Notes: generated from the letters alone by a model not told the origin. DNA of 64,000 nt from Haliotis cracherodii (GCF_022045235.1 NW_027266265.1:34720001-34784000), one strand, 5' to 3'; positions 12,101-55,928 are shown, numbered from the stretch's first letter. A program made the numbers and translations.

Positions 12101-15100
12101 GGTCGCTCCCCAGTGAAGGGGTGGCGAGCGCTGGCTCGTTCACTACCTCCGCACCTTTATTCCTAGCGGGGTCAGACGCCTTCTCCGAGGCCGAGGCTCC
12201 AGCTAGCGGATTTATGGCCCAGAGCCAGGTGGGTTCTCTTGAACCCCCGGCACCTCGGGACCGGGACTCGGCTTCGGGCCGGGGGCAGCCCGGGGATGCG
12301 AAGACCCAGGCCTTCGGGTGTCCTTTTCCTGCCTCGTCCGCTCACTCTCTTGAGGACGAGTCGACTACGGTCGGCTCGGAATCGAGAGAGGAGGAGTGGA
12401 TGGAGGAGGGAGGGGATGACTCGGAGGCTTCGGGAATTTTTTCCATCGCATCCTCGTTGAGGCACGTACGGGACAAGATTGTCCAGGTACTGCCTCAGGT
12501 GGCTGCGCCTATGCCCGAGTCGGATCCAACTGAGTTCCGCCTTCCGGGGGACGCCTTCGCTCCTAGCAAGGCGCCCCAGGTGCGGCTCCGTATCTTGTCC
12601 TCCCTGACACACGAGGTCATCGACCCTCTGCTCTCGGGTGCCCGCAGGAAGTTCGACCTGCCCGAACTTAATAAGCGGTACCCGTTGGCAGAGGACGGTG
12701 ATTTTGAGGTGCCAGTGGTCGACGAGTGCGTTTGGACTTCTGTCACCCTGGGGGGGTCTTCGACCCCCGCCTTGGCTAAGGCCAAGCAGGGCCGGCGATT
12801 GCCCCCCTTTCCCATGTGCGGCGCGGAGTTGAAGGCGGCTTACGTTTGCTTTGAGGAGCAATACCGTAATGCAGGCCAACAGCTTCGCATAGCCGTACAC
12901 TCTGCTTATCTGTCGGCTGTACAGAGAGAGCTAGTGGGAGAGGGGCCGGCCGACTCTTCGGAGTTGGCGGTGCAACTGACGGAGGTCCACAGTCATCTCG
13001 CGCGGGACGCTATTCGTAGCTGTGCTTCGCAGATGATGTGCGCAGTTATGGGCATGCGCAGGCTGTGGATGTCAGTATCCAAGTACTCGACGTCCACACG
13101 CCAGGATCTCCTAGCTTTGCCTTATAAGATGGGTTCTACCCTCTTCCCTGGGGCTCAGCAGGTAGTCCGAGAGGCCGCTCAAATGTATGCCTCCATCAAG
13201 GACTCTAAGGCCTTGTTGGAAATACCTAGCGTTAAACCGCGTAAGCGGGCCTCTCCGCTTGAATCCTCCCACGCTGACGCGCCGGCTCAGAAGTCCGCAC
13301 CTACTTGGAAGCAGCCGCTTCCTACAGGTAAGGGCGCCGGGAGGAGCAAGCGAGGCAGGGGCCGGGGCAAGGCAGCTGGTCGAGGCCAGCAGCCTTTTCG
13401 CGGGGCCGGGAACCCATCGGGTTCCCATTAGCGCCCGAAGCGCCCCGGTTATCGAACTGCTGACAGCCGGGGTCCACTGCCTCAAACCGGATGTCCCCGT
13501 AGGCGGCCGACTGGCTCTATTCCTGAGGGAATGGGAGACAGTCACCTCAAATCCCTGGACCCTGTCCACTCTAAGGGATGGCCACTTGCCTCGGTGGAAA
13601 CATCATCCGCCCCCCTTCTCCGGGATAAAGCACACTCCGGTGCCTGCTACCCGAGAGAAGGCGGAATTCCTCCGTGCCGAGGTCAACGCACTTCTTATGA
13701 AGGCGGCGATCGAATCGGTTCCCGTGGGACAGGAAAGCGAGGGCTTCTACTCGACTTATTTCCTAGTCACCAAAAAAGACGGAGGGTTCAGACCTATTCT
13801 CAATCTGAGAAGGTTGAACAATCATATAGAGGTACCGTCCTTCCGGATGGAGACACTGTGCTCAGTGATCTCCGCGGTCGAGACAGGAGAATGGCTAACG
13901 TCAATAGACCTAAAAGACGCCTATCTCCACGTACCCATACACCCCGAGTTCAAGAAATACCTCAGGTTTTCTTTCGACGGGAGGTGTTATCAGTTCAGGG
14001 TTCTACCATTCGGGATCGCCACGGCCCCGAGGGTGTTCACCAAGCTGATGTTGATTCCGGCCCAAATAGCCAGGTCGAAAGGTCGGCTCTGCCACCCATA
14101 CCTCGACGACTGGTTACTAAGAGCTCTATCGCAATCCCTGAGTCAGATAGCTACACAACAAGTGATAGATATTCTGATCACTCTAGGGTGGATAGTCAAT
14201 CTCAAGAAGTCAGACCTGAGACCTACTCAGAATCTAGTCTTCCTAGGGGCGAATTTCAACACGGTGAGCGGTCTTGTATCACTGTCACAAGATCGCATTA
14301 CCAAGGTCAGAAGCGTTACTACCCAGTTCCTTCTGTCCGCAAGTCACACTGCTCGTACATGGCTCCAGTTACTGGGCAACATGACGGCGACAGTGGATGT
14401 GGTTTGGCGGGCGCGCCTGAGAATGAGACCCATTCAACAAGCGCTCCGTCGACTTTGGGTGAACTCGGAAAATCTCGAGACTGTTCTCGAGACCCCGCAG
14501 TGGCTCATTACACACCTTCAGTGGTGGACCGAGGTCGGGAATCTGTCCCGGGGGCTCCCCCTCGACACTCCCGTTCCGTCTCTCACAGTTCAAACAGACG
14601 CGTCACTCTCCGGCTGGGGAGGCGTTCTGAACGATCACACTGCCTCGGGACTATGGTCCCAGCAGGAGATCAAATTGCATATCAATGTGCTAGAACTGAG
14701 AGCGGTCAGGTTGGTGTTCCAACGCTTCCTGGATCTGCTTCGTGGCCAAGTGGTTCGTCTAGAGATGGACAACCAAACGGCGATGACTTACATCCGGAAG
14801 CAGGGGGGAACGGTGTCTCCGTCGCTTCTCCAAGAGACGTGGCAGTTCCTCCTATGGTGCGACTCACACGATATCAGGGTGCTACCTGTTTATCTCCCGG
14901 GGGTAGACAACGTCCGTGCGGACGCTCTGTCTCGCCGGATCCTCGCTCCTCACGAGTGGAGGCTCGACCCGGGGATATTCGGGATTATCTCCCAATTATA
15001 CGGGTCGTTCCAGGTGGATCTGTTTGCGTCTGGGGTGAACCACCAGACACCAACGTTCTGCTCCCGAGTCCCCGACCCGAGGTCGGTGGCACCGGACGCC

Positions 15101-17793
15101 TTCCAGCTAGATTGGACGGACAGAATTCTGTGGGCATTCCCCCCAGTACCTCTGATCCACAAGGTCCTATCTCAGCTCACCACTCAACCTGCGCGACTAC
15201 TTGTGCTCCTGGCACCTCTTTGGTCGGCGCAGAGTTGGTTTCCAGTAATACTCAGGTTTCTGGCTCAGCCTCCTGTTCTATTACCTTTACGACCGGACCT
15301 ACTATCCCAGAACGGGGCCCTCCACCCGAAATCCCAGGATTCAGTGGGTGGCTTGGCCACTGTCAGGAATCGCCTCCAGAAGAGCGGTATTCCTGCACGA
15401 GTTGCAGACACAATACTGGCTTCGCGGAGGGATTCGACAAACGTTCAGTACGAGGATAGATGGGCCTGCTATGCGCGCTGGTGTGTCGATAGAGGGATTG
15501 CAGATCCCTTTTCTGCAGATCTCGTAGCCGTGCTTGAGTTCCTCCAGTCGCGACTAGATGACGGCCTGGCCGCATCAACAGTCCGGGGGTACTCTACAGC
15601 TATCGCAGCTTTTCACGTCCCTGTCGACGGGGCACTTCTGGGTGCGCACCCATTAGTGCAGCGCTTTTTAGCAGGTGTGGACAGGATCCGACCGCCGGTA
15701 CGGCGGATCAGTCCCCCTTGGGACTTGTCAATCATTCTTGATTGGCTGTCCGGTCCTTCCTTTCGGGATCTGTCGTCTCTCTCTCTTCAGCTGTTGAGCT
15801 GGAAGACGGCGTTCCTTGTGGCGATAACGTCCGGCAGACGGGTAGGCGACATTCATGCAATGTCAGCCGATCCCGAGTTAACTGTCTTCCACCGGGACAG
15901 GGTCAGTATTCGGCTGCCGGATTCTTACCGTCCTAAGGTCGCACACGCCTTCCACGTGACGGCTCCTATTGAGCTACCTGCTCTTTCACAGCCTTCCTCG
16001 TCGGGGACCACTGCAAGACATGCTCATGTCTTGGATGTCCGTAGGACACTCAAGGCCTATATCAGCAGAACTAAGGGTATCCGTAAGGATAATCAACTAT
16101 TTTGCTGTTATGGCGGTAGGAAGGCTGGCTCACCTGCGAGCAAACAAACTATCTCCAGGTGGATAGTCTCTACTATCTGTACTTCGTACACCCTTCAAGG
16201 CAGGGACCCCCCTACCAAGTTGAAGGCTCATTCGGTTAGAGCAGTGGCTACATCACAAGCGTACGCCGCGGCTCTGCCCATTGAGGAGATCTGCTCCGCG
16301 GCTATTTGGAGCCAGCCGAGCACGTTCATCAAACATTACCAACTCGACAAACACTCAAGCGAGCGTGCTCGGTTTGGTCAGTCAGTTCTCCGAACTGGGC
16401 AAAGTTCTAATCTCTAGCCGATTGAGCCTTCGAGATTTTAGATCGCCCGGACCGGTTATACAACTGCTCAGTAACGGTCCGGATTATATCTTCTACGGTC
16501 GATAAATTATCCGTCCTTACTACTCGATAATACTCGTATTGCACAGCACTCCTCAGATCCTCGGAGACCCTCTGGCCTAGCTCAGCGCGGTTATAGTCTC
16601 TCGTGATCAACGCCCCTATATCACTCGTTCAAACAAGTGGGGGGGAGGGTGTTTTGAGTTCTCAAAATATGATCAGCCAAGAATAAAGGCTAATATCATA
16701 GCATATGGTCGACCACGCCCTGTCTCCAGCCCCCGCCTCTCGACGGTGGTGCCTCACGATAAGGTTGGTTCCATTTTATTGAACTCTCAGTTTATTCTCT
16801 GAATATTCAAAATACGATGTATTTATTTCGCTTGTTGCTGACGGATGCCACTTCCTAGATTATCTTTAGGAGTCTGTCTTGATGCAATAAGTGCCCCAAG
16901 GAGGATTTAATCTGAAAGAGAATTTTACAAACCTGTAGAGGTTGTGAATTCTCTGATGAAATCCTCCTTGGGGCACGGCCACCCACCTCCCCACATTCCG
17001 TCAGCATTAGACATATGGAAAGTGATTTGGGTGAGAGTTGCTTCCCTTGGCGTGACGCGCCGTAGAGGGTGAGGCACCGTAAGGGTGGTCGTATATCATA
17101 CAAAAACGAAGTTTTTTGTGTGGTAACATTTTATTAAGGAAAATGGTTACAACTATGTCATGTAGATTTTCTTGAACCAGGAAAATGCAATAAGTGCCCC
17201 AAGGAGGATTTCATCAGAGAATTCACAACCTCTACAGGTTTGTAAAAGTTTCTGGCATGCCCAAGGGATGCAACTCTGCACAGCAAATCATGGCGCCTTA
17301 GACGACTGGGCCACCCATGCCCACCACTAACCCAGAATCCTAATGGGCCAGCTGAAGGTTCACCATGTTAAATAACACAACAGCAGAGCATTCTACTATT
17401 CCTTTCACAGTTGTGGACATGCTTCACTAAACACACCAACACAGATCACCTACCTTACTTGTTTTATCCCAGTGCACCTTGGGGACGTAGACATACTTAA
17501 GATGTTGCAAGTCCTTCTGGCACCTCTCACCATTACCACCCTCATTCACAAAGTCCAGCTCCTGGGCTAATGTCCCCTTCAGATCCTGGAAACATGCATA
17601 AAGGTACAATGATATAGCCATGGTGGCAAGTGGTCCTGTGTACAGCACACTGGTCACAAATCTGACAAAGTTAAGTGACATTTTCAAGAGTCGGTGAATG
17701 AGTGACAGTGTTCAGCAGCCTGACTCCTGTGAGTTTCTAGAGATCCAGGCCTGGCAAGAAACTTTGTTCAGAACATGACCCTGTTCCTGTTAT

Positions 17794-28100: not shown

Positions 28101-29084
28101 ATTTTCTTCCCTATTTTATTGAGTAAACATCAGGTAGACCTGTTCAGAACAAAATCTTATTAATCCTGAAGTTGCTTGTTTGTTTGTTGTTCAACGCCGC
28201 ACTCATCAATAGTCCAGCTATATGACGGCGGTCTGTAAAAATAAACCGAGTCTGGACCAGACAATCCAGTGATTGATATCATGAGCATCGATCAAACGTA
28301 ATTGATATACGATGACATGCAACAACAAAGTCAGCGAGTCTGTTATCACATCAGCCTTCGTTTCTAATCAAAGTGCGGCATAATCACATTGTACCTTTCA
28401 CAAAATATGGACCCATGAAGGCGACTATGCTTGTCGTAAGGGGCGACTAACGGGATCGGGTGGTTAAACCCAACTCACTCACTCACTCACTCACTCACTC
28501 TGAAGTGTGTAACTTCCTTGTCTTCGAAGTATTCACATTGTTTAATTGATATGATAAATGCCATTACATATCACATCGTAAATAAGGCTAATAATGACTT
28601 TCAAAAGAATCCAGAGAAGAAGCGCAAGAACCGGAAAGTCAACTAATAGATAAACAGCGATTTTATGTGCGCATCATATGTAAATTAAAGCGACGAATCT
28701 CATTCCAAATTTCTTGCTAAAAACAGAATTGATTGTACGATTTCGAATATACGTTTGTTTGTTGTTTAACGCCGTACGCAGCAATAATCCAGCTATATAT
28801 ATGTCTCCAGCAACCAATGCTTGCCGTAAAAGGTGACAATGCTTGTCGTAAGAGGCGACTTATTTTTAATAATTTCATTTCAGCATGAAATATCTCAAAC
28901 GATTTCTCAATAGAAGGGAAGCAACTCTTCCGTAACTGCACTTTCCACGAGCAGATGTGTAAATATGTCATTGGATGACTTTTTGTAAAATGCGTCTGTA
29001 GTTGTGAATTTGTTATTATAATGGTTTCAGGTAATGTCGACAAAGTGCCAAACGATCACAACACACAACAACTTTTTATTAGGG

Positions 29085-29357
29085 AGTGAGCTGGCTTTAA
29101 CGCCGCTTTCAACAGTATTCCAGTTATATCACGACGTGTCTGCTTAATGTGTGAGGAAAGCCCAAAGTGATGCAGGTCTCAGACGTGTACCACTTTGGTG
29201 AAACCCACGAGCACAGGTATGGTGCTGACAAACCTAGAAACATAATCGGGGCGAACCGGGATTCGAACCCACATTCATAGGGTTTGGGCGTGCCCACGGG
29301 ACGCAACTCTGCACAGCAAATCGCGGGGCCTTAGACGACTGGGCCACCAGTGCCCCC
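29085..29357 (-). mobile_element. tRNA-derived SINE family A
   Basis: Near-identical to 29755-30037. Confidence 0.8.
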
Positions 29358-29754
29358 AACTTTCTAATAAACAAAATAACTTAAATTACTGACACAGTTT
29401 GTGATTTGTTGTCAAATACGGTCACATGTTATACGTATCGAGGAATGTAAGCAATATCTATCAACTATTAAAATCTAAAACAGACTTCCATAGACATATA
29501 CGGTCTATTTGACACGTGACTGTGCATTCACAAGCTGTGATCTGACCAGCAAACCTTACAACGTTGCAGATCTCCATACAACAACATAACAGAATGTTGG
29601 TAAGAAATGCCTAGCTAGAACTGCTCTAAATATTCCGTCAATAGGAGTAGAGTGGCGAGTAGTTTTATAACACTGTTAAGGTTTCTAAATATCAATTTAA
29701 AAAATGAGATTATCATGTTATTGCGCCGCCATGCTCGGGAGGTACACTAAACAG

Positions 29755-30037
29755 GAGTGAGTGAGTGAGTTGGGTTTAACGCCGCTTTTAACATTATTCC
29801 AGTTATATCACGGCGTGTCAGCTTAATGTGGGAGGAAAGCCTGAAGTGATCCAGGTCTCAGACGTTTACCACTTCGGTGAAACCCACGAGCACGGGTATG
29901 GTGCTGACAAACCAAGAAACATAATCGGGGCGAACCGGGATTCGAACCCTCAATCATAGGTTTCTGGCATGTCCAGGGGACGCAACTCTGCACAGCGAAT
30001 CGCGGCGCCTTAGACGACTGGGCCACCCGTGCCCCCC
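29755..30037 (-). mobile_element. tRNA-derived SINE family A, full length
   Basis: A box TGGCCCAGTCGTCTAAGG, B box GGTTCGAATCC, tail gcggcgttaaacccaactcactcactc. Confidence 0.85.
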
Positions 30038-30860
30038 ACTGAACAGGAGGACAGTCTACTACAGCTTCAGAAGGTACCCTACAACACGAGGAGGCACACT
30101 TCAACCGTAGGAGGTAAACAAGCTCAGAAGGTCTACTTCAACCTCAGAAGACACACAGACCCTTGAAGATTCCGGGGTAGAATAGGTCTTCAGCAACCCA
30201 AGCTTGCCGTTAAAGGCGACTATGATTGTCGTAAGAGGCGACTAACGGTATCGGGTGGTCAGGCTCGCTGACTTGGTTGATGCATGTCATCGTATCCCAA
30301 TTGCGTAGATCGATGGTGATATCAATCATTGGGTTGTCTGGTCCAGATTCGATTATTTACAGACCGCCGTCATATAGCTGGAATATTGCTGAGTGAGGCG
30401 TTAAACCACAAATAATAACAACAACAACAACAACACAGCCATCTCGAAATGTACGCTAAATTCTCATGTAGTACACTACAACGTAGGAGGTAAACAACAT
30501 CAGAAGGTACACTGAAATCTCGGAAGGCACCTCTGAAAATAGTCATCAACCTCATAGGCTACACTGTAATTTAAGAAGGCACACAGCAGTTTCTTAGGGC
30601 TCCCTACAACAACATATGCCACACCAAACTCCTTCCCAGCGCGTGACACCTTCGTTACACTCTCGGTAACATCGCTGCCACCAGTGTGGGCGCGGCCATT
30701 ACAAGAATCTTGAAATTTGCCCTCTAACCCCATGTGTAGTAACGTTTATACTTTTGTTTATGTCTTTGAGAATGCCATCATATTCATTTTGAAAAGGTTT
30801 ACGGCTGACCATGTTTTCCAGATGAATATACTTTGTTGTTTTGATAATCAGATTGGTTAG

Positions 30861-31030: not shown

Positions 31031-32089
31031 CAGATTGGTTCGAGATTGCAGACTAACGGAAAATCAACCAACTACTCCCTTACATTCTTACTAATTTCAA
31101 TTAAAGATGATAGTTTTAATGAAATAGAAATTCAAATTGACAAACAAACAAACTAATTCATCAGCGGTAAGTGTATTCGCTGTCACGACAGTCGTCACTT
31201 GTTTGTAAACACAACGGTCATTCGGTTGCGAGTTCAACTCCAAGCATGGTTGGGGCCACCTATCACAGTGGGGAGTTTTGACTGCTGGCAGCGATAGTAT
31301 AGAGAGCTCCGCAAACAGACTATCGCCGTGAGGAGCTTGATGCCACACTACAATCTAAGAAGGTGCACTGAAGTCTCTGAGGGGAACTACAATCACGGAT
31401 GTACACACCAACCACGGAGGGTACACATCGACCACTTCAAAAAGTATAACAACGTCAGGGGTACACTTTAACCCATAAGCAGCACTGCAATCTAAGGAGG
31501 TACACTGCAACCTTCGAAAGTACACTGCATTCTCAGGAGGTACACTACAAACATCAACAACCACTTTAGGAGGTGCAGCCACTATATTTCACAAATTACT
31601 TTCAAATATGTTTTGGTAGCTCACATTAGTATTGGACACTGACAGGATGTTTAGGTTTTTTTAACTGTCACTTCCAACAGTTCAGTATCATCTTATGTTG
31701 TGGTCAACTGCATCTGGAACTACTCTGGAACCAGCCAACTTACCATGCTTCTCAATACCCTCGTGGAGGTTCCGGGTTAGACTTCCCAAGCAGCCTATGC
31801 TTGTCACCCCAGATGTTTAAGCATCGGATGATGAATTGGTCAGGCTCAGTGACTGTTGATTGTCAACATACACCGGCGATGTGTATCTTTGTTTATAATA
31901 TTTGGAACTGGTCTGCCTGGTCCAAACTCGATATTTTGTTGGTATCGAATGTAGTTGTTATAGAACAAACGCCGGGGGTATGTTATTGTACTGACAATAT
32001 GCTACTGACTTGTATCTCGGGTAGATCATGTGATAGCAAACAGTTTACCACCACTGTTGGTAATTAATCCTAACCATCTTTGCTTTGCT

Positions 32090-32465
32090 TTCCTTAACCC
32101 ATTCATGTTCCTCATCCCAGCTCGGTCTGGGGAGAAACTTGGCTTCTTGATGGCTGTCTTTGTTTCTCATACAATGTTCCTGAGTCTGATCCACGGCAAC
32201 ATGCCACCGTCCTCGGACAGCACATCCAGGCTCTCTCTGTACCTGTTGATGAACGAGATCCAAGGATTCCTCACCATCTTTGCTTCTATCATTGTGCTCG
32301 TGGTTCATCACCAGAAAGAGGAGGCACAGACCAACACAACATCCTCGGACACAAACCCTCTTCTGGACCGTGCAAGTCCTGTAACTGGGAACGTTTACTT
32401 GACTGTGTATTTTTTGTCATATCTCTGACAAACCTGGAGCCAGCATCTTGATCCTGTTCATTTAG
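32090..32465 (+). pseudogene. 5'-truncated, frameshifted copy of the Cys-loop receptor gene (end of M1 to M4)
   Basis: LNPFMFLIPARSGEKL...HHQKEE homologous to downstream copies; no extracellular domain; frameshift before M4. Confidence 0.88.
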
Positions 32466-33153
32466 AAGATGAAAAGAATTAGGAACGAAAATTAGTTTTG
32501 AGATGCAAAATTAGTACTATTAAATCTACAGGTAAGCTAGTTTTTACATTAAAGACATGGTAAATGTAAATGTTTATCTCCATTCTATCATGAAAACACG
32601 AAACGCTGTCTGATGTTGGAGAAGTCAGTAAGTGAAGCGGTTTTCATTGACCGTATTGTTTTGAGTGCATTGTCGACTACACACCGATAAATGAGGTCTT
32701 CATAGATCGGATGATGAATTGGTCGGGCTCAGCAGCTGTTGATTGTCAACATACACCGGCGATGTGTATCTTTTTCACAACATTAAGAACTGATTTGACT
32801 GGTCCAAACTCGATATTCTGTTGGAATTCGAATGTAGTACGAATACTGTCTTGTATCTCTGGTAGATCATATGATTGCAAACAGTTTACTACCACTGTTG
32901 GTGGTCATTACAACTTTTGCTATAATGGACAATTGTCATGTTTATATACTCAATGTTAAAATACAGCAGTTGGAATTTCCAGTGGTTCACGTGAAAGTTC
33001 CAGGTTCGATTCCTAACATGGGCAAAATGTGTTAAGCCCATTTGTTGTATCTTCCTCTGTGGTATTGCTGGAATATTGCTCAAACTGAAATGACACACCT
33101 CACATTATCAAGAAGATTCTTGAATACACAATGCCATTTAGAAAGTGGTCAAA

Positions 33154-33470
33154 TGTAACAAATGTTATATTTGGGATAACATTTTTTTAGTAAAGTGCAG
33201 ATTCTCGTACTTTTGGGGGGTTGAGTCCCGTCCGGAATTCGAACCCACACTTGCCAATTTACACATGTCAGAGGTGTACTCAAAGTACGTGTTCTTGACT
33301 ACAAGTTGTCGGACTTTCATTTTTTGTGGAAGCCTCGGTGTCTGAGTGGGTAAGAACGCTGACTTTGTGTGCTGGCGATTAGGTGCCTCACTCTGGGACT
33401 CAACCCCCAAAAAGTATGAGAATCTGTACTTTACTAAGAAAGTGTTATCCCAAATATAACATTTGTTACA
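33154..33470. mobile_element. Foldback/MITE with ~75-bp inverted repeats
   Basis: tgtaacaaatgttatatttgggataac...gttgagtccc versus gggactcaac...atttgttaca; absent from the other array spacers. Confidence 0.75.
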
Positions 33471-34150
33471 AAAGAAGATTCTTCTGTGTGAATCTTTATT
33501 ATTGTTGAGTGGATGTTCATGTGCACCTGCACGTTTATATGTCATATGCGTTGGAGACTTTTTACATATTATATTACCATGGATAATTCATTTATTGTGT
33601 TCGCAAAATCGAATGTTTTTACACTGTGATTTTTTGTTTCCTCATGTTGTACATTAGCCAGATTACATATCTGTCCAACACATGCAAACAAATCCAGTAT
33701 ATGCATAGCTGTCATGACAACTCTAAACTCTAAACAATTATAACGATTTTATTAGAAATGCACATGTAACATTTACAAGCGGGTTTCCGAAATGCACTTA
33801 GATGCAAATGACAAAGCAAAATACCCTTCAGATGGATATCGATCGACTGGGACTATCCGTACATAATGCATACAGCATCCGCTTCAAATTCCACTGGGAT
33901 TACTAAAAGTATTTTTCTTCATTCATTAAATCGATTCTGGACAGTTTGTTATGGTTACCATTGACCTAACACGGTTCCAAGGACCTCTCTGTTGTAACAG
34001 TGGTTGTAGAATGGATTATGCCAGTGTTTCAAGGACTATAAAGGACGAGCTTGCCTATTACGCCCAGTCGAATCTGTTACATCGGATTATCGAAACTGGT
34101 TATTCTCTAGCGTTGACACTGTATGTTGTATTGCAGTGAAGTGATTTAAT

Positions 34151-35266
34151 ATGGACCGTTACATGAGAATCGGTATGGTCAGAATATGCCTTCTCCTGTT
34201 TGTATTTATGGGTGCAAAAGCAGATTCAGAAACAAGAAACTCTTTAAGTCATTTGAGGAAGGATCTTCTTGCACAACAAGATAATGCTGTTCCTCCGTTC
34301 AAAGGAAACTCGAAATCAGTAGACGTTTCACTGTCCTTCACCCCGGTCACGATCCTAGACCTGAACTCTGTCACCCAAGTGTTGTCTGTGACTGGATATC
34401 TTAAGTTAAGCTGGCTTGACTCGAGACTCACTTGGAATGTTCACAATCATTCAGATGTCCGATTGATGGAGGTAAGAAGTGGCGACATATGGACACCCAC
34501 TATATCTGTTGGCAACAGTGTATCAGACATGAATCCAGTGGAAACAAAGATACCTATTGTTGTCATGCATTCCGGGTACGTGACATGGCAAGCTGTCGAT
34601 GTTTTCCGGACAGTGTGTAAGATAGACGTTTCACGATTTCCTTTCGACACTCAACACTGTCCCCTGCTCTTCACTCCTCCCTATGGATACACACTTAACA
34701 TTACAATTGATGATGACGATATTCCAGGAAAGAATTTCTTGGGTGAAAGCGGTGAATGGAAAACTCTAAGAGTTTCTGCGCTCCTCTCATTCATAGAAAC
34801 ATTTGAAATTGCCGAATACATGCTCACATTGGAAAGGAAATATGTTTACTATCTCATTAACTTTCTCTTCCCCATGGGCCTCATGTCCATCCTTAACCCA
34901 TTCGTGTTCCTCATCCCAGCTCGGTCTGGGGAGAAACTTGGCTTCTTGATGGCTGTCTTTGTTTCTCATACAATGTTCCTGAGTCTGATCCACGGCAACA
35001 TGCCACCCACCTCGGACAGCACATCCACGCTGTCGCTGTACCTGTTGATGAACGAGATCCAAGGATTCCTCACCATCTTTGCCTCTATCATTGTGCTTGT
35101 GGTTCATCACCAGAAAGAGGAGGCCCAGACCAACACAACATCCTCGGACACAAAACCCTTTTCTGGATCGTGCAAGTCCTGTAACTGGGAACGTTTACTT
35201 GACTGTGTATTTTTTGCCGTATTTTTGACAATAGCTGGTGGCAGCATCTTGATCCTGTTCATTTAG
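34151..35266 (+). CDS. Intronless atypical nAChR-like Cys-loop ligand-gated ion channel subunit, copy 1
   Basis: Signal peptide, IWTP, Cys-loop CKIDVSRFPFDTQHC, four TM segments, GEK cation motif; TATAAA at 34037. Confidence 0.92.
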   Translation: MDRYMRIGMVRICLLLFVFMGAKADSETRNSLSHLRKDLLAQQDNAVPPFKGNSKSVDVSLSFTPVTILDLNSVTQVLSVTGYLKLSWLDSRLTWNVHNHSDVRLMEVRSGDIWTPTISVGNSVSDMNPVETKIPIVVMHSGYVTWQAVDVFRTVCKIDVSRFPFDTQHCPLLFTPPYGYTLNITIDDDDIPGKNFLGESGEWKTLRVSALLSFIETFEIAEYMLTLERKYVYYLINFLFPMGLMSILNPFVFLIPARSGEKLGFLMAVFVSHTMFLSLIHGNMPPTSDSTSTLSLYLLMNEIQGFLTIFASIIVLVVHHQKEEAQTNTTSSDTKPFSGSCKSCNWERLLDCVFFAVFLTIAGGSILILFI

Positions 35267-36855
35267 GGGATAAAAAGAATTAGGAACGGAACACGCATCA
35301 TGATTTTTAAGATGTAACATTTAGCATGAACAATTCTACAGCTAACCTAGTTTTACTTTGAAAACACGATATGTGTATGTTTATCTCCATTCTATCATGC
35401 TAACACAAACGCTGTTTGGTGTTTGTAAAAGGTCTTAGTGAAGCAGTTTGGTTGACCCCAATGTTTGGAGTGGATTGTCCATGAATTAATTAAACACCAA
35501 TTAAATGCTTTTGTTCAAAGGATGGCGATGTATATTGGTTCTACATTTGTATTCTTTGCCAGTAAAGATGATAATCATTGACAGTGTGTGTCACAGCTAC
35601 TTCGTAAGCAAAGTGTGTATCCTTAAAAATTAAGCAAGAATTGCAATGTTGTCCTTAATATTTGCTATTTAGTAACATTCCCTATGCATGTCGCACAAGG
35701 TCTTCGAGAATCAGCTGATGAATTGGTCAGACTCACTGACTGTCGATTGTCAACATACTCCGGCAACGAACTGGTTTGTCTGGTCCAAACTTGACATTTT
35801 GTTGGAATTCGAAAGTAGCTGGAATTCTGCTGAGTGAGGTGTAATAGAACAAACGCCAGGTGTTTGTTATTGTACTGACAATATGTTACTGTCTTGTATC
35901 TTGGGAAGATCTTATGATAGCAAACAGTTTACTACCACTGTTTGTGTCATTACAACTTTGGCTATAATGGACAATTGTCATGTTTACATACTTAATGTAA
36001 ATATACTGCAGTGGGATATTCCAGCTGTTAATGCGATTGCGCGTAATGTCAAAGACTCAGGTTTGATTCCCCACATGGGCACAATGTGTGAAGCCCATTT
36101 CTTTTACCTTCCTCTGTGATATTGCTTGAATGATGGTAAGTGGATAAAATTATTCTCAAACTAAAATAACACACTTCACATTATCAAAAAGATTATCCTA
36201 TGTGAATTTTTATTATTGTTGAGGTGGTGTTCATGTGCACCTGCAAGTTTATATGTCATATGCTTTGGAGACTATTAAACATATCACATTACCATAGATA
36301 GTTCATTTATCGTGTTTCGCAGATTGAATGATTTTACATAGTGATTCTTTGTTCCCTCATGTTGTACATACGTCAGATGACATATATGTCACACATGCAA
36401 ACAAATCCAGTATATGCATAGCTTTCATGACAACTCTAAACTCACAATTATAACGATTTTATCAGAAATACACATGTAACGTTTACAAGCTGTTTTCCCA
36501 AATGTACATAGATGCAAATGACAAAGCAAAATACAGTTTAAATGGATATTGATTGACTTGGACCATCCGTACATAATGTGTACAGCAATCACTGCAGATT
36601 CCACTGGGATAACTTAAAGTATTGCTATACATTCATTTAATTGCTCCTGGACAGTCTGTTATGGTTACCATTGACCAGACATGGTTTAATTGCCCTCTCT
36701 CTCTCTCTCTTGTAACAGTGCCTGTAGCCTGTTTTGTGGCAATGTTTCACGAGGGTTATAAAGGACGAGATGTGCGCACAGTCGAATCTGTTATGCCAGA
36801 TTATTGAAACTGGTTATTCTCTAGCGTTGACACTGTATGTTGTATTGTATTTAAT

Positions 36856-37971
36856 ATGGACCATTTCGTGAGAATCGGTATGGTCAGAATATGCCTTTTC
36901 CTGTTTGTATTTATGGGTGCAAAAGCAGATTCAGAAACAAGAGACTCTTTAAGTCATTTGAGGAAGTATCTTCTTGCACAACAAGATAATGCTGTTCCTC
37001 CGTTCAAAGGAAACTCGAAATCAGTAGACGTTTCACTGTCCTTCACCCCGGTCACGATCCTAGACCTGAACTCTGTCACCCAAGAGTTGACTGTGGCTGG
37101 ATATCTCAGGGTAAGATGGCTTGACTCGAGACTCACTTGGAATGTTCACAATCATTCAGATGTCCGATTGATGGAGGTAAGAAGTGGCGACATATGGACA
37201 CCCACTATATCTGTTGGCAACAGTGTATCAGACATGAATCCAATGGAAACAAAGATACCTATTGTTGTCATGCATTCCGGGTACGTGACATGGCAAGCTG
37301 TCGATGTTTTCCGGACAGTGTGTAAGATAGACGTTTCACGATTTCCTTTCGACACTCAACACTGTCCCCTGCTCTTCACTCCTCCCTATGGATACACACT
37401 TAACATTACAATTGATGACACCGATATTCCAGGAAAGAATGTCTTGGGTGAAAACGGTGAATGGAAAACTCGAAGAGTTTCTGCGCTCCTATCATTAATA
37501 GAAACATTTGAAATTGCCGAATACATGCTCACATTGGAAAGGAAATATGTTTACTATTTCATTAACTTTCTCTTCCCCATGGGCCTCATGTCCATCCTTA
37601 ACCCATTCGTGTTCCTCATCCCAGCTCGGTCTGGGGAGAAACTTGGCTTCTTGATGGCTGTCTTTGTTTCTCATACAATGTTCCTGAGTCTGATCCACGG
37701 CAACATGCCACCCACCTCGGACAGCACATCCACGCTGTCTCTGTACCTGTTGATGAACGAGATCCAAGTATTCCTCACCATCTTTGCCTCTATCATTGTG
37801 CTTGTGGTTCATCACCAGAAAGAGGAGGCCAGAACCAACACAACATCCTCGGACACAAAACCCTTTTCTGGATCGTGCAAGTACTGTAACTGGAAACGTT
37901 TACTTGACTGTGTATTTTTTGCCGTATTTTTGACAATAGCTGGTGGCAGCATCTTGATCCTGTTCATTTAG
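36856..37971 (+). CDS. Intronless atypical nAChR-like Cys-loop subunit, copy 2
   Basis: Near-identical paralog 2705 bp downstream; TATAAA at 36757. Confidence 0.92.
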   Translation: MDHFVRIGMVRICLFLFVFMGAKADSETRDSLSHLRKYLLAQQDNAVPPFKGNSKSVDVSLSFTPVTILDLNSVTQELTVAGYLRVRWLDSRLTWNVHNHSDVRLMEVRSGDIWTPTISVGNSVSDMNPMETKIPIVVMHSGYVTWQAVDVFRTVCKIDVSRFPFDTQHCPLLFTPPYGYTLNITIDDTDIPGKNVLGENGEWKTRRVSALLSLIETFEIAEYMLTLERKYVYYFINFLFPMGLMSILNPFVFLIPARSGEKLGFLMAVFVSHTMFLSLIHGNMPPTSDSTSTLSLYLLMNEIQVFLTIFASIIVLVVHHQKEEARTNTTSSDTKPFSGSCKYCNWKRLLDCVFFAVFLTIAGGSILILFI

Positions 37972-39589
37972 GGGATAAAAAGAATTAGGAACGGAACGCG
38001 CATCATGATTTTTAAGATGTAACATTTAGCATGAACAATTCTACAGCTAACCTAGTTTTGCCTTGAAAACACGATATGTGTATGTTTATCTCCATTCTAT
38101 CATGCTAACACAAACGCTGTTCGGTGTTTGTAAAAGGTCTTAGTGAAGCAGTTTGGTTGACCCCAATGTTTGGAGTGGATTGTCCATGAATTAATTAAAC
38201 ACCAATTAAATGCTTTTGTACAAAGGATGGCGATGTATATTGGTTCTACATTTGTATTCTTTGCCAGTAAAGATGATAATCATTGACAGTGTGTGTCACA
38301 GCTACTTCGTAAGCAAAGTGTGTATCCTTAAAAATTAAGCAAGAATTGCAATGTTGTCCTTAATATTTGCTATTTAGTAATATTCCCTATGCATGTCGCA
38401 CAAGGTCTTCGAGAATCAGCTGATGAATTGGTCAGACTCACTGACTGTCGATTGTCAACATACTCCGGCAACGAACTGGTTTGTCTGGTCCAAACCTGAT
38501 ATTTTGTTGGAATTCGAATGTAGCTGGAATTCTGCTGAGTGAGGTGTAATAGAACAAACGCCAGGTGTTTGTTATTGTACTGACAATATGTTACTGTCTT
38601 GTATCTTGGGAAGATCTTATGATAGCAAACAGTTTACTACCACTGTTTGTGTCATTACAACTTTGGCTATAATGGACAATTGTCATGTTTACATACTTAA
38701 TGTAAATATACTGCAGTGGGATATTCCAGCTGTTAATGCGATTGCGCGTAATGTCAAAGACTCAGGTTTGATTCCCCACATGGGCACAATGTGTGAAGCC
38801 CATTTCTTTTACCTTCCTCTGTGATATTGCTTGAATGATGGTAAGTGGATAAAATTATTCTCAAACTAAAATAACACACTTCACATTATCAAAAAGATTA
38901 TCCTATGTGAATTTTTATTATTGTTGAGGTGGTGTTCATGTGCACCTGCAAGTTTATATGTCATATGCTTTGGAGACAATTAAACATATCACATTACCAT
39001 AGATAGTTCATTTATCGTGTTTCGCAGATTGAATGATTTTACATAGTGATTCTTTGTTCCCTCATGTTGTACATACGTCAGATGACATATATGTCACACA
39101 TGCAAACAAATCCAGTATATGCATAGCTTTCATGACAACTCTAAACTCACAATTATAACGATTTTATCAGAAATACACATGTAACGTTTACAAGCTGTTT
39201 TCCCAAATGTACATAGATGCAAATGACAAAGCAAAATACAGTTTAAATGGATATTGATTGACTTGGACCATCCGTACATAATGTGTACAGCAATCACTGC
39301 AGATTCCACTGGGATAACTTTAAGTATTGCTATACATTCATTTAATTGCTCCTGGACAGTCTGTTATGGTTACCGTTGATCAGACACAGTTTAATTGCTC
39401 CCTCTCTTTTGTAACAGTGCCTGTAGCCTGTTTTGTGGCAATGTTTCACAAGGGTTATAAAGGACGAGATGTGCGCACAGTTTAATCTGTTATGCAGGAG
39501 TAGTGAAACTGTGGTTATTCTCTAGAGTTGACACTGTATGTTGTATTGCAGTTAAGTGATGTAATAGGGACCCTTACGTGAGAATCGGT

Positions 39590-40681
39590 ATGGTCAGAAT
39601 ATGCCTTCTCCTGTTTGTATTTATGGGTGCAAAAGCAGATTCAGAAACAAGAGACTCTTTAAGTCATTTGAGGAAGTATCTTCTTGCACAACAAGATAAT
39701 GCTGTTCCTCCGTTCAAAGGAAACTCGAAATCAGTAGACGTTTCACTGTCCTTCACCCCGGTCACAATCCTAGACCTGAACTCTGTCACCCAAGAGTTGA
39801 CTGTGGCTGGATATCTCAGGGTAAGATGGCGTGACTCGAGACTCACTTGGAATGTTCACAATCATTCAGATGTCCGATTGATGGAGGTAAGAAGTGGCGA
39901 CATATGGACACCCACTATATCTGTTGGCAACAGTGTATCAGACATGAATCCAGTGGAAACAAAGATACCTATTGTTGTCATGCATTCCGGGTACGTGACA
40001 TGGCAAGCTGTCGATGTTTTCCGGACAGTGTGTAAGATAGACGTTTCACGATTTCCTTTCGACACTCAACACTGTCCCCTGCTCTTCACTCCTCCCTATG
40101 GATACACACTTAACATTACAATTGATGACACCGATATTCCAGGAAAGAATTTCTTGGGTGAAAATGGTGAATGGAAAACTCGAAGAGTTTCTGCGTACCT
40201 CTCATTAATAGAAACATTTGAAATTGCCGAATTCATGTTCACATTGGAAAGGAAATATGTTTACTATCTCATTAACTTTCTCTTCCCCATGGGCCTCATG
40301 TCCATCCTTAACCCATTCGTGTTCCTCATCCCAGCTCGGTCTGGGGAGAAACTTGGCTTCTTGATGGCTGTCTTTGTTTCTCATACAATGTTCCTGAGTC
40401 TGATCCACGGCAACATGCCACCCACCTCGGACAGCACATCCAGGCTCTCTCTGTACCTGTTGATGAACGAGATCCAAGGATTCCTCACCATCTTTGCCTC
40501 TATCATTGTGCTCGTGGTTCATCACCAGAAAGAGGAGGCCCAGACCAACACAACATCCTCGGACACAAAACCCTTTTCTGGATCGTGCAAGTCCTGTTAC
40601 TGGGAACGTTTACTTGACTGTGTATTTTTTGCCGTATCTCTGACAATAGCTGGTGGCAGCATCTTGATCCTGTTCATTTAG
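39590..40681 (+). CDS. Intronless atypical nAChR-like Cys-loop subunit, copy 3
   Basis: Upstream ATGs changed (AGG, GTG); ATG of signal peptide MVRICLLLF retained at 39590; TATAAA at 39456. Confidence 0.9.
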   Translation: MVRICLLLFVFMGAKADSETRDSLSHLRKYLLAQQDNAVPPFKGNSKSVDVSLSFTPVTILDLNSVTQELTVAGYLRVRWRDSRLTWNVHNHSDVRLMEVRSGDIWTPTISVGNSVSDMNPVETKIPIVVMHSGYVTWQAVDVFRTVCKIDVSRFPFDTQHCPLLFTPPYGYTLNITIDDTDIPGKNFLGENGEWKTRRVSAYLSLIETFEIAEFMFTLERKYVYYLINFLFPMGLMSILNPFVFLIPARSGEKLGFLMAVFVSHTMFLSLIHGNMPPTSDSTSRLSLYLLMNEIQGFLTIFASIIVLVVHHQKEEAQTNTTSSDTKPFSGSCKSCYWERLLDCVFFAVSLTIAGGSILILFI

Positions 40682-40912
40682 AGGATGAAAAGAATGAGGA
40701 ACGGAACGCGCATCATGAGTTTTAAGATGTAAACTTACTGCTATCAAATCTACAGGTAACCTAGTTTTTACATTAACGACACGGTTAATGTAAATGTTTA
40801 TCTCAGTTCTATCCTAAAAACACGAAACACGATCTGAATTAACTAAGCACCGATTATATGCCCGTAAACAAAGGATAGTGATGTATATGCTTACATGTTG
40901 TTTTTACATATG

Positions 40913-41088
40913 CAGTAAACTACGGTTATAACGAACACGCTTATAACGAACTGACGGATATAACGAACTAACTTTTTTGGTCCCGATTATTTGCTGTAGT
41001 TATGCTGTATATATGCTTATAACGAACTACGGTTATAACGAACTAAAATTAGTAGTCCCTTTGAGTTCGTTATAACCGTAGTTTACTG
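40913..41088. mobile_element. Tc1/mariner-type MITE
   Basis: 24-bp TIR cagtaaactacggttataacgaac, internal ttataacgaac repeats, TA on the right flank. Confidence 0.75.
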
Positions 41089-42243
41089 TAGATTCTTTGC
41101 CCGCGTAGATGCTAATCATTGACATTGTGTATCCCAGCTACTTCGTAAGTCAAATGTGTATCATTAAAAATTATTCAAGCCTTGCAATTTTGTCTCTATT
41201 ATTTGAAATACCTTCTCTCAGTGGATTTCTATCATGTCTTCTGCCAAAATGCATTGCCATACATTCTTTGAATATTGTAGCAACCGCAACTCTGCATTTT
41301 GTAGATTTCATTATTCCAAAATATGTACCGACAATGACTGAGTGAAAAGGCGTACTTTTTTCATAATACACTACACTTATTTTGATAATGAGATATGTCA
41401 CGTTAAATAAAGCTACACTTAATATATTAGAATCAGTTATGTTATTAATTATCGAAAGATAAAACAATATCCCTATCAAAAGAGGAGTAGCATATTAACA
41501 TTCGTGGAGAAGCGGCCGTCAAATCAGAGATGGCTTTAGTGATTTGAAACCGGAGTATTTTCCAAATTCATGGTGAAAAATAGTTCCTGGAATAAGCTTA
41601 TTCAAGTAACTTACTTCTGTATGACTCCTTCGACGACTGTATCGTCATGATCCATATACATTGAATTTAATCATTTTCATTTCATATTTCATGAATGTAC
41701 ATGACTCGTTTGAATTTCTTTGCAATTAAATTGCTGGGCAAAATAAAGTACGTTTGATGGTGTCTTACAATGAAACAAACAAACTGGTTATGGTGATGAA
41801 TTTGATACTGGCTTAATAGTTGTGTATTGGATCTTCAGTTTGCAGTGTTTCGGCGATTGTTTTCAGCCTAATAACGTTTTGAAAATGTTTGTGACCTTGA
41901 GCCAAATCCAACTTTCAAGTGTATAAAATTACCTTGTGCCTTAGATGTGCGTACATCATACGTGAAATACACCCTCACCATGTGTTTTATGTTTCTAAAT
42001 GATATTCAGCATGCGTATATGCATGTATGAATATGAAATCAAATTCATATTCATATTCATACATACATACATACGCATGTGCATATGCATATATACACAC
42101 AAATGCAATATACATATAGATATTACATATAATATAATATACAGTTAAGGATTGACTGTGTATTTGTTTAGGTTCATTGAGGTATGAATCGAAAAACCGA
42201 TGTGCAAACTGTATGAAATGAAGAAAATACACAGTCAATGCTT

Positions 42244-52047: not shown

Positions 52048-52176
52048 NNNNNNNNNNNNNNNNNNNNNNNNNNNNNNNNNNNNNNNNNNNNNNNNNNNNN
52101 NNNNNNNNNNNNNNNNNNNNNNNNNNNNNNNNNNNNNNNNNNNNNNNNNNNNNNNNNNNNNNNNNNNNNNNNNNNN
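52048..52176. other. Assembly gap (Ns) next to (TA)n-rich repeats
   Basis: Run of N. Confidence 0.99.
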
Positions 52177-53140: not shown

Positions 53141-54512
53141 CTATCCAAACAGTGACACGGCATATCCAGAGAATGTGCTCCATTGTCCGTGAACATAATC
53201 CCCGTTGCCGTAGAACAAATTGATTGAAACCTCATCGCCTTGTTTCAAGTTCACGAGAATAGAGTTTGTTCCTGAACCTCTGTTGTTGAAGGAGCCCGAA
53301 TACAACCGTCCCATTTCTGCCCCGTTGACCACAAACATTGTTTCAATGGTGGTGTTATAGCCACTGAGGATGGTGGCGCTGAAATGGTAGACACCGATGG
53401 CAGGTGATGTGAACTTGCCGGTGTAGGGGTCGTATGCACCAGCATTGTTGATGATGATGTCGTCGAAGATTACAGTGTCGACGTCCTTGAGATATGGTCT
53501 GTTGGTGCCAACGCGGGCCGAGAAAGAAATGTCCTGTGATTGTCCAAGAGCTGGTCGAACTGAAAATAGATGAAGGCATAGGACGTTACAGTGAAGCATG
53601 GCACCGAGAATATCCATAATGTAGTCTCGTTATAGTGATAACGTATGTAGCTTCACGGCAGTATAGCGAGCCTATAGAAGATCAGACAATATCAGAAAAT
53701 GAACAAGTCAATATCAGAAAATCCATCAGACAATATCGGAAAATAGGTCAGACAATATCAGAGAATGGATTAGACAATTTCAGAAAATGGATCAGACAAT
53801 ATCAGAAAATGGATTCGACAATATCAGAAAATGGATGAGACAATATCAGAAAATGGATAAGACGATATCAGACAATGGATTAGACAATGTCAGAAAATGG
53901 AGACCATACTAGAAATATGAATTTTAATGTGATAAGTTTACGTTCATAGCAGAGATATTTTATGATTTTGAATTATTTTGTATCGCTTATATTTCAAACG
54001 GTGGCATAATAACGAGGTTAGTGTTAAATTAAGATTCGATGTCGTGAACTTTTTCTGGACGTCATTACTCAGATGCAATGGTGAGCAAGGTACAAATTTA
54101 GGATACTCGAGAATTTTATTTGTTAAAGAAGTTCCTGAACACTGAAATATCTCATAATAAACCAATCATGAACGCCGTAAACTTATATCGGTGGCAAGTA
54201 CTAACGTCCGTTCCTCAACGCCCTCATTCCGTTCTGCATGTTGTATAACTCCGCCGACAGCTCGTCCATTCTGTGCTGAAAACTCTCAAGTCTTCCATGA
54301 GAAAGTCTAAGTTGTTTTTCGAGATGTGAAATTTCCTCCAAACACGAACACACTTCGGTTGTTCCCGCCGTCTGGAAGTTTGAATCCGGCTCCCGAGGGT
54401 TTGTTGTAGTGTCTCGGGAATTTTCGCCATTTGTCGGAAACACGGGCCACAGGGCGGTGGCTATCTGAGCCAAGCACATCCCGAACAGAAGGGCCGATGT
54501 TGTGATAGACAT
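53141..54512 (-). CDS. Secreted C1q-domain-containing protein, paralog; exons 54512-54206 and 53559-53141
   Basis: TATAAA ~70 bp upstream; C|gttagt and ttttcag|TT phase-1 intron; SFSAR..VIFDDIIIN..YDPYTGKFTSP..STFSGY. Confidence 0.92.
53680..53900. repeat. 21-bp minisatellite in the C1q intron
   Basis: Unit gacaatatcagaaaatggatt, ~10 copies. Confidence 0.85.
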
Positions 54513-55777: not shown

Positions 55778-55928
55778 NNNNNNNNNNNNNNNNNNNNNNN
55801 NNNNNNNNNNNNNNNNNNNNNNNNNNNNNNNNNNNNNNNNNNNNNNNNNNNNNNNNNNNNNNNNNNNNNNNNNNNNNNNNNNNNNNNNNNNNNNNNNNNN
55901 NNNNNNNNNNNNNNNNNNNNNNNNNNNN
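55778..55928. other. Assembly gap (Ns)
   Basis: Run of N. Confidence 0.99.

Follow-up and report, generated by a model that had tools for sequence, protein, structure and literature searches.

A small tandem array of nicotinic acetylcholine receptor-like genes with altered acetylcholine-contact residues in the abalone Haliotis cracherodii

Array layout and gene copies

[quoted passage not shown] The array lies on the + strand at 31.8-41.2 kb and consists of three intact nAChR-like gene units and one relic, arranged head to tail, with unit starts spaced 2799, 2705, and 2710 bp apart. All three intact copies contain Neur_chan_LBD (E ~1e-31) and Neur_chan_memb (E ~1e-13) domains, above the Pfam curated cut-offs. 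On balance, we think that the products of these genes build pentameric, cation-selective channels whose gating ligand is not acetylcholine (ACh), and that the genes form part of the gastropod arm of a known receptor expansion.

Copy 1 (34151-35266, +) is an intact single open reading frame (ORF) of 371 amino acids, identified by ORF, Pfam, and alignment evidence and modelled using AlphaFold2, while copy 2 (36856-37971, +; ORF, Pfam, and alignment) is of the same length and differs by seven amino-acid changes of its own and a 9-bp deletion in the leader immediately 5' of its ATG. A putative TATA box (TATAAA), identified by sequence match, lies 114 bp 5' of the copy 1 start codon (34037-34042, +) and is conserved across the array, its counterparts in the other two units being found at 36757-36762 and 39456-39461. 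A TTGCAG acceptor 5' of the ATG could be taken as a sign of an intron in the 5' untranslated region; a local promoter is at least as likely, because TATAAA is conserved 99-114 bp 5' of the ATG. Two ATTAAA hexamers resembling poly(A) signals are found 223 and 234 bp past the copy 1 stop (35489-35505, +), and the pair recurs 3' of copy 2 at 38194-38210; these, too, are sequence matches.

The start of copy 3 (uninterrupted ORF at 39578-40681, +; ORF and Pfam) requires separate consideration. Alignment of the three leaders places its ancestral start codon at 39566-39568 (+), where ATG has become AGG, and the same change creates the AG acceptor used by the corresponding RefSeq model, XP_071091311.1. 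This model takes its start codon from a 38-nucleotide mini-exon (38393-38430, +) that is followed by a GT donor. The mini-exon has a twin in the spacer before copy 2 (35688-35725, +), also followed by a GT donor, and each of the two segments codes for a 12-residue N-terminal peptide with the start codon first. Translation of copy 3 may therefore begin either at the first remaining in-frame ATG, giving a 363-amino-acid protein that retains the signal peptide (39590-40681, +), or within the spliced mini-exon. An earlier, sequence-only reading of this DNA had described three intact single-exon genes plus a relic at ~2.7-kb spacing; the array, the relic, and the spacing hold, as do copies 1 and 2, which can safely be regarded as single-exon genes, whereas the single-exon status of copy 3 is uncertain. 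RefSeq lists copy 3, with its modelled N-terminal extension, as 'neuronal acetylcholine receptor subunit alpha-7-like [Haliotis cracherodii]'. The array genes are thus already annotated there under a generic alpha-7-like name.

The relic fourth copy (32087-32465, +) retains codons 246-371 (the end of M1, M2, M3, the loop, and M4). It was recovered by alignment and by tblastn, which matched it at 93% and 81% identity in two different frames; the frameshift lies near 32353-32359, and Neur_chan_memb is its only Pfam match. Because a remnant of spacer sequence (31794-32058, +; unit positions 415-676 in a blastn comparison of unit 2 against the window) directly adjoins it upstream, ~1.65 kb must have been deleted from this unit, and with it went the promoter, signal peptide, and entire extracellular domain. 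At the other end, the array terminates in a partial spacer past copy 3 (40683-41205, +; blastn). An assembly artefact is rejected, given the absence of N runs in 31-42 kb together with the 2-3% patchwork of coding differences between copies. Upstream of the array lies a pair of 281-nucleotide direct repeats (29081-29361 and 29760-30040), which are 90% identical and 679 bp apart.

Predicted fold and binding residues

The copy protein matches 359 Protein Data Bank (PDB) sequences, the best of which is the human alpha7 nAChR (7.7e-41, 143 bits). The octopus chemotactile receptor (CR) CRT1 ranks below alpha7 (6e-30, 107 bits, residues 35-318), and is followed by Alpo4 (1.2e-26) and 5-HT3A. An AlphaFold2 model built from an 8-row alignment had a predicted local distance difference test (pLDDT) score of 35 and was discarded in favour of one built from a 134-row alignment, which for copy 1 gave a pLDDT of 91.3 and a predicted template-modelling score (pTM) of 0.81. 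The latter comprises a beta-sandwich extracellular domain and four transmembrane helices (231-254, 261-283, 293-330, and 346-370), and its top Foldseek matches are all nAChR subunits, with template-modelling (TM) scores of 0.72-0.82.

Residues were mapped by alignment to human alpha7 and by a 134-sequence alignment of nearest relatives. The Cys-loop (C156-x13-C170, with FPFD) is present and both of its cysteines are invariant in the 134 relatives; the pre-M1 Arg229 and the M2-M3 motif are likewise retained. The sequence SGEK at 259-262 provides the -1' Glu signature of cation channels rather than PAR, and the Glu is found in 130/134 relatives. These features, which agree with the Cys-loop and GEK motif reported by the sequence-only reading, support placing the array genes in the nAChR branch of Cys-loop subunits, with the signature of a cationic pore.

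The residues that contact ACh in alpha7 have fared differently. All five aromatics of the binding box are replaced or deleted: Trp55 of loop D corresponds to Tyr83, Tyr93 of loop A to Gly121, Trp149 of loop B to Pro177, and Tyr188 and Tyr195 of loop C to Ile215 and Phe218, respectively. The vicinal CC pair of loop C is gone along with four to six neighbouring residues, leaving the beta9-beta10 hairpin as a two-residue turn. In the pore, M2 9' Leu is replaced by Val and 20' Glu by Gly, and the M3-M4 linker is reduced to ~27 amino acids. The missing loop-B Trp, the short loop C without CC, and the short M3-M4 loop (given as ~30 amino acids) had all been noticed beforehand, and the description of the genes as intronless, tandem nAChR-type subunits that have lost their ACh contacts agrees with the ORFs, the Pfam matches, and the five altered aromatics. 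Since every canonical ACh-contact residue is lost, ordinary ACh binding by these subunits appears unlikely.

Relatives, phylogeny, and exchange between copies

Trees were inferred using FastTree (134 rows) and IQ-TREE under the posterior mean site frequency model (53 rows), with rows that did not include cephalopod CR sequences. These trees nest the array first within Haliotis and then within gastropod clades. The three copies and an H. rufescens sequence form a 4-row clade (Shimodaira-Hasegawa-like approximate likelihood ratio test, SH-aLRT, 97), and further clades of 6 rows (SH-aLRT 100), 16 rows (99), and 25 rows (96) follow, the named members of the first two being Haliotis and those of the latter two Haliotis only. 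In a 45-row clade (SH-aLRT 99), all named members are gastropods (Haliotis, Gigantopelta, Babylonia, and Littorina).

The loop-B Trp is absent and the M2 9' Val present across this whole 45-row clade, for which a short intracellular loop, intronless genes, and tandem arrangement also hold. The CC pair is found in just 1/134 nearest relatives, having been lost in 133/134. Because the whole clade is without the loop-B Trp and the CC pair is so rare, the 'CR-like' traits are clade-wide and not specific to the array. The suggestion that these features set the array apart is thus not sustained, and neither is a specific kinship to cephalopod CRs, given the stronger match to alpha7 than to CRT1 and the well-supported Haliotis-only clade. 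Judged by sequence comparison, the array probably lies outside the cephalopod CR family.

Copy 3 has an H. rufescens ortholog, XP_048253777.1, at 96% identity, which is the only protein that this species gives to the 90% identity cluster; a protein from H. asinina shows 72% identity. When 1.84 billion representatives were scanned exhaustively using HMMER, 8490 relatives were recovered, among which the H. asinina cluster alone exceeds 50% identity, and a word-indexed protein search returned 15-16 matches, nearly all of the named ones from Haliotis, whether a single query or the 134-row profile was used. Many of the top matches of the exhaustive search (proteins P0061-P0066 and similar) are 600-1469 amino acids long and contain two to six receptor stretches. 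These are probably gene models spanning several tandem intronless copies, and the 'LBD-NTM-LBD-NTM' architectures (LBD, ligand-binding domain) of published surveys may in part be mergers of this kind.

Within the H. cracherodii genome, relatives are abundant. One paralog, L004 (XP_071086983.1; G000:C2:33403003-33404088), is 1.35 Mb away and 79% identical. A six-frame search using copy 1 scored at least 110 matches (314 candidates), nearly all full length and in one open frame, spread over many tandem arrays; a Pfam LBD search gave at least 150 scored domains in single frames (456 candidates), and all 29 paralog loci examined contain complete ORFs of 353-443 amino acids. Far larger arrays of single-ORF Cys-loop receptors (6 to >15 copies) are found at C56:12.05-12.16 Mb and C5:35.50-35.79 Mb, with further arrays of this size at C23:12.18-12.28 and 68.10-68.28 Mb and at C12:71.84-71.90 Mb. 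The array is one small cluster among hundreds of such genes, and is not very special within its genome.

Comparison with L004 reveals a mosaic. Across 34151-40681, some coding segments diverge from L004 by 1% at the nucleotide level and others by 39%. The synonymous rate (dS) is ~0.1 in codons 25-136 and 211-320, and lies between 0.9 and saturation for the signal peptide, for codons 137-210 (which cover loop E, the Cys-loop, loop B, and loop F), and for M4; synonymous changes number 16/157 sites in the low-dS segments versus 50/80 in the others (Fisher p = 6e-17). This pattern is most simply read as long-range segmental gene conversion between the paralogs, with the central binding loops left out of the exchange. 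To our knowledge, neither this conversion mosaic nor the Haliotis-only subfamily has been individually described. Overall, the ratio of the nonsynonymous rate (dN) to dS against L004 is 0.37-0.42, and in old codons 137-170 (loop E/Cys-loop) a dS of 1.07 against a dN of 0.11 directly shows that the family protein has long been under purifying selection. Within the array, the spacers of unit 1 differ from those of units 2 and 3 by 11-24% substitutions and many indels versus 2-4% for coding sequence, while units 2 and 3 are ~1% apart in their spacers and 2.4% apart in coding sequence. This discordance suggests conversion or unequal exchange among the array units.

Differences between sequences lean towards the binding loops, which hold 12/21 variable extracellular positions (7.5 expected, p = 0.036), or 10/18 when the three copies are considered alone (p = 0.066). 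Five changes fall in loop D, where copy 1 retains the older state found in L004 and H. asinina, and where the H. rufescens ortholog has derived residues in common with copies 2 and 3. Since the binding loops line the ligand pocket and also make up the subunit interface, tuning to ligands and tuning to partners are not separable in these data, and with so little divergence the variation is also compatible with relaxed constraint.

Two other features of the window may be mentioned. A 158-amino-acid ORF with a C1q domain (Pfam 2.2e-21) lies at 53141-53617 (-), between N runs at 52048-52176 and 55778-55928; genes with this domain form a further family with known expansions in molluscs. A GC-rich block at 11605-16417 (+; 56-60% versus ~40% around it) has long overlapping ORFs, one with a reverse-transcriptase domain (6e-19), and on these features is identified as a retroelement.

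Possible functions and comparison with known receptors

The explanation that we favour, non-ACh-gated cation channels of the gastropod expansion, combines a history and a mechanism. The array is a young, still-rearranging tandem cluster, apparently shaped by duplication, deletion, and segmental gene conversion, and its products would, by homology, assemble into pentamers, either as homomers or with close paralogs. Gating would be by a non-ACh ligand at a remodelled, lid-less inter-subunit pocket, with the segments that differ from paralog to paralog, in loops D, E, B, and F, setting ligand or partner specificity, and the clade-wide replacement of the Leu gate by 9' Val may ease channel opening. 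Several points weigh against this explanation. The proposal of a non-ACh ligand is drawn from the lost contact residues; dN/dS among the three copies is 0.8-1.3, on few changes; and some copies may be drifting, because one start codon has been lost and the fourth copy is dead. A deep sister relation to the cephalopod CRs may yet hold, as these lie outside the tree. A two-copy complex prediction (residues 25-371) scored 0.02, which is evidence in neither direction, and, as a weak point, the array proteins were found in no run-assembly (Logan) source, unlike their oyster relatives.

The sequence-only reading had gone further, proposing contact-chemosensory receptors. As contact or distance chemoreceptors for food, settlement, or conspecific cues, the genes would be independently derived analogues of CRs, expressed in tentacles, epipodium, osphradium, or larval sensory cells, a possible but unsupported reading that we regard as rather unlikely. 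The gross traits in common with CRs (intronless genes in tandem, a lost ACh box, and a short intracellular loop) count in its favour, but they are general to the 45-row clade, to which many genes of this genome belong, and to bivalve genes, whose expression in gill, gonad, and embryos and whose responses to stress and infection have been described (PMC6896357). The lean of copy differences towards the binding loops, five of them in loop D, points the same way, as does conversion that spares the central binding loops, an outcome expected if distinct specificities are kept; the loop enrichment is, however, marginal, and the same loops form subunit interfaces. The predicted pocket, with Lys or Arg at 85, Thr, and Gln, is not obviously hydrophobic, and CRT1 is a weaker match than alpha7, although a chemoreceptor role has already been raised for divergent gastropod clades (PMC13174522). 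In a wider version, which we consider unlikely, ionotropic chemoreceptors that arose from the nAChR stock independently of CRs, which have the same origin, would make up the Haliotis-only subfamily and perhaps also the entire surrounding clade with 9' Val and no loop-B Trp, whose named members are gastropods throughout; conversion would hold the channel core uniform and spare the ligand loops. Were it true, each paralog would have its own ligand specificity, for example for cues from algae or biofilms or for cues to settle. Few receptors are known for the chemical cues on which abalone rely to settle, feed, and spawn, and a second independent recruitment of nicotinic receptors to chemosensation would make a good case of convergent receptor evolution.

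Two further explanations concern the subunits' need for a ligand, or for a function, at all. Non-binding accessory or structural subunits, joining alpha-type nAChRs or other family members in the manner of vertebrate beta, delta, and alpha5, would account for the missing CC pair and degenerate principal face, for the aromatics kept in loop D (Tyr83) and at the Tyr195 position (Phe218), for the extreme conservation of M1-M3 and the pore across the Haliotis clade, and for variable loops at interfaces that also decide partner choice. Vertebrate non-alpha subunits generally keep the loop-B Trp, however, and the loss seen here exceeds theirs. A large share of the genome's paralogs has apparently lost the same residues, too many for a few canonical alphas to partner, and with CC pairs so scarce among the nearest relatives we think an accessory role quite unlikely. 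Least probable, in our view, is that the extra copies are redundant young duplicates turning into pseudogenes, with at most one functional. The near-neutral dN/dS among copies, the lost ATG of copy 3, the leader deletion of copy 2, the truncated and frameshifted fourth copy, and the single H. rufescens protein in the 90% cluster would all fit such decay, and intron-poor mollusc nAChRs are more often unexpressed or expressed at low levels (PMC6896357). Against this, none of the three ORFs contains a stop or an indel, in contrast to the spacers of unit 1, which have accumulated many indels and 11-24% substitutions relative to units 2 and 3, the TATA box and leader blocks are conserved, and constraint at the family level is strong; at 2-3% divergence, an intact ORF and a dN/dS near 1 are both poorly informative. 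As matters stand, the main value of the array is as a well-resolved case of growth in the mollusc nAChR-like expansion (duplication, deletion, start loss, and loop-sparing conversion), and its three near-identical natural variants, which differ mostly in loops D, F, and C, would be convenient for de-orphanisation.

The closest known system is the expansion described by Jiao et al. 2019 (PMC6896357) in molluscs and annelids, with 99-217 nAChR genes in bivalves, 64 in Lottia, and 127 in Aplysia. These genes are mostly intronless or intron-poor, form tandem arrays that include degenerated members, have often lost their ACh-binding residues, and vary widely in expression (gill, gonad, embryos, stress, and infection), the intron-poor ones being more often silent. 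The array resembles them in its ligand-binding and transmembrane domains without coding introns, its lineage-specific tandem arrangement with a degenerated member, its loss of principal ACh-binding residues, and its GEK-type cationic pore. The MolluscaGenes preprint (2026, PMC13174522) recognises 15 clades, among them CRs that are predominantly cephalopod and a 'CR-like' clade in gastropods, bivalves, and chitons, and explicitly raises the possibility of ionotropic chemoreceptors among the divergent gastropod clades whose binding residues are altered. The two surveys differ from the present work in scope, having covered bivalve, Lottia, Aplysia, and Octopus genomes and transcriptomes. The chemosensory idea put forward for the window is thus an already published hypothesis, and the traits on which it drew are hallmarks of the lophotrochozoan nAChR expansion (PMC6896357).

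Comparison with individual receptors places the array subunits more precisely. Cephalopod CRs (octopus CRT1, PDB 8EIS and 9E6B; squid CRB1) have the same nAChR-derived pentameric fold, intronless tandem genes, lost ACh residues, and short intracellular loop, traits that are not CR-specific and that the wider expansion also has. They differ in that CRT1 is the weaker match (107 versus 143 bits) and that the window genes fall in clades in which every named member is a gastropod. Sensory-organ expression and gating by hydrophobic ligands have been shown for CRs. The CR clade, moreover, is predominantly cephalopod (PMC13174522). Vertebrate alpha7 (PDB 7KOO and 9VIQ) is the best sequence match, has the same fold (TM 0.72-0.79, 25-27% identity), and has the Cys-loop FPFD, SGEK, and M2-M3 PxTSD in common with the array subunits, which differ from it in having no aromatic box or CC pair, a loop C shorter by ~6 residues, the 9' Leu to Val and 20' Glu to Gly replacements, an intracellular domain of ~27 rather than ~130 amino acids, and no introns. 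Alpo4 of Alvinella pompejana (PDB 8BX5, PMC10338036), which gives no response to ACh or serotonin, is a solved lophotrochozoan nAChR-like orphan that likewise has no CC tip, yet it keeps its aromatics, including the loop-B Trp, and the abalone genes do not.

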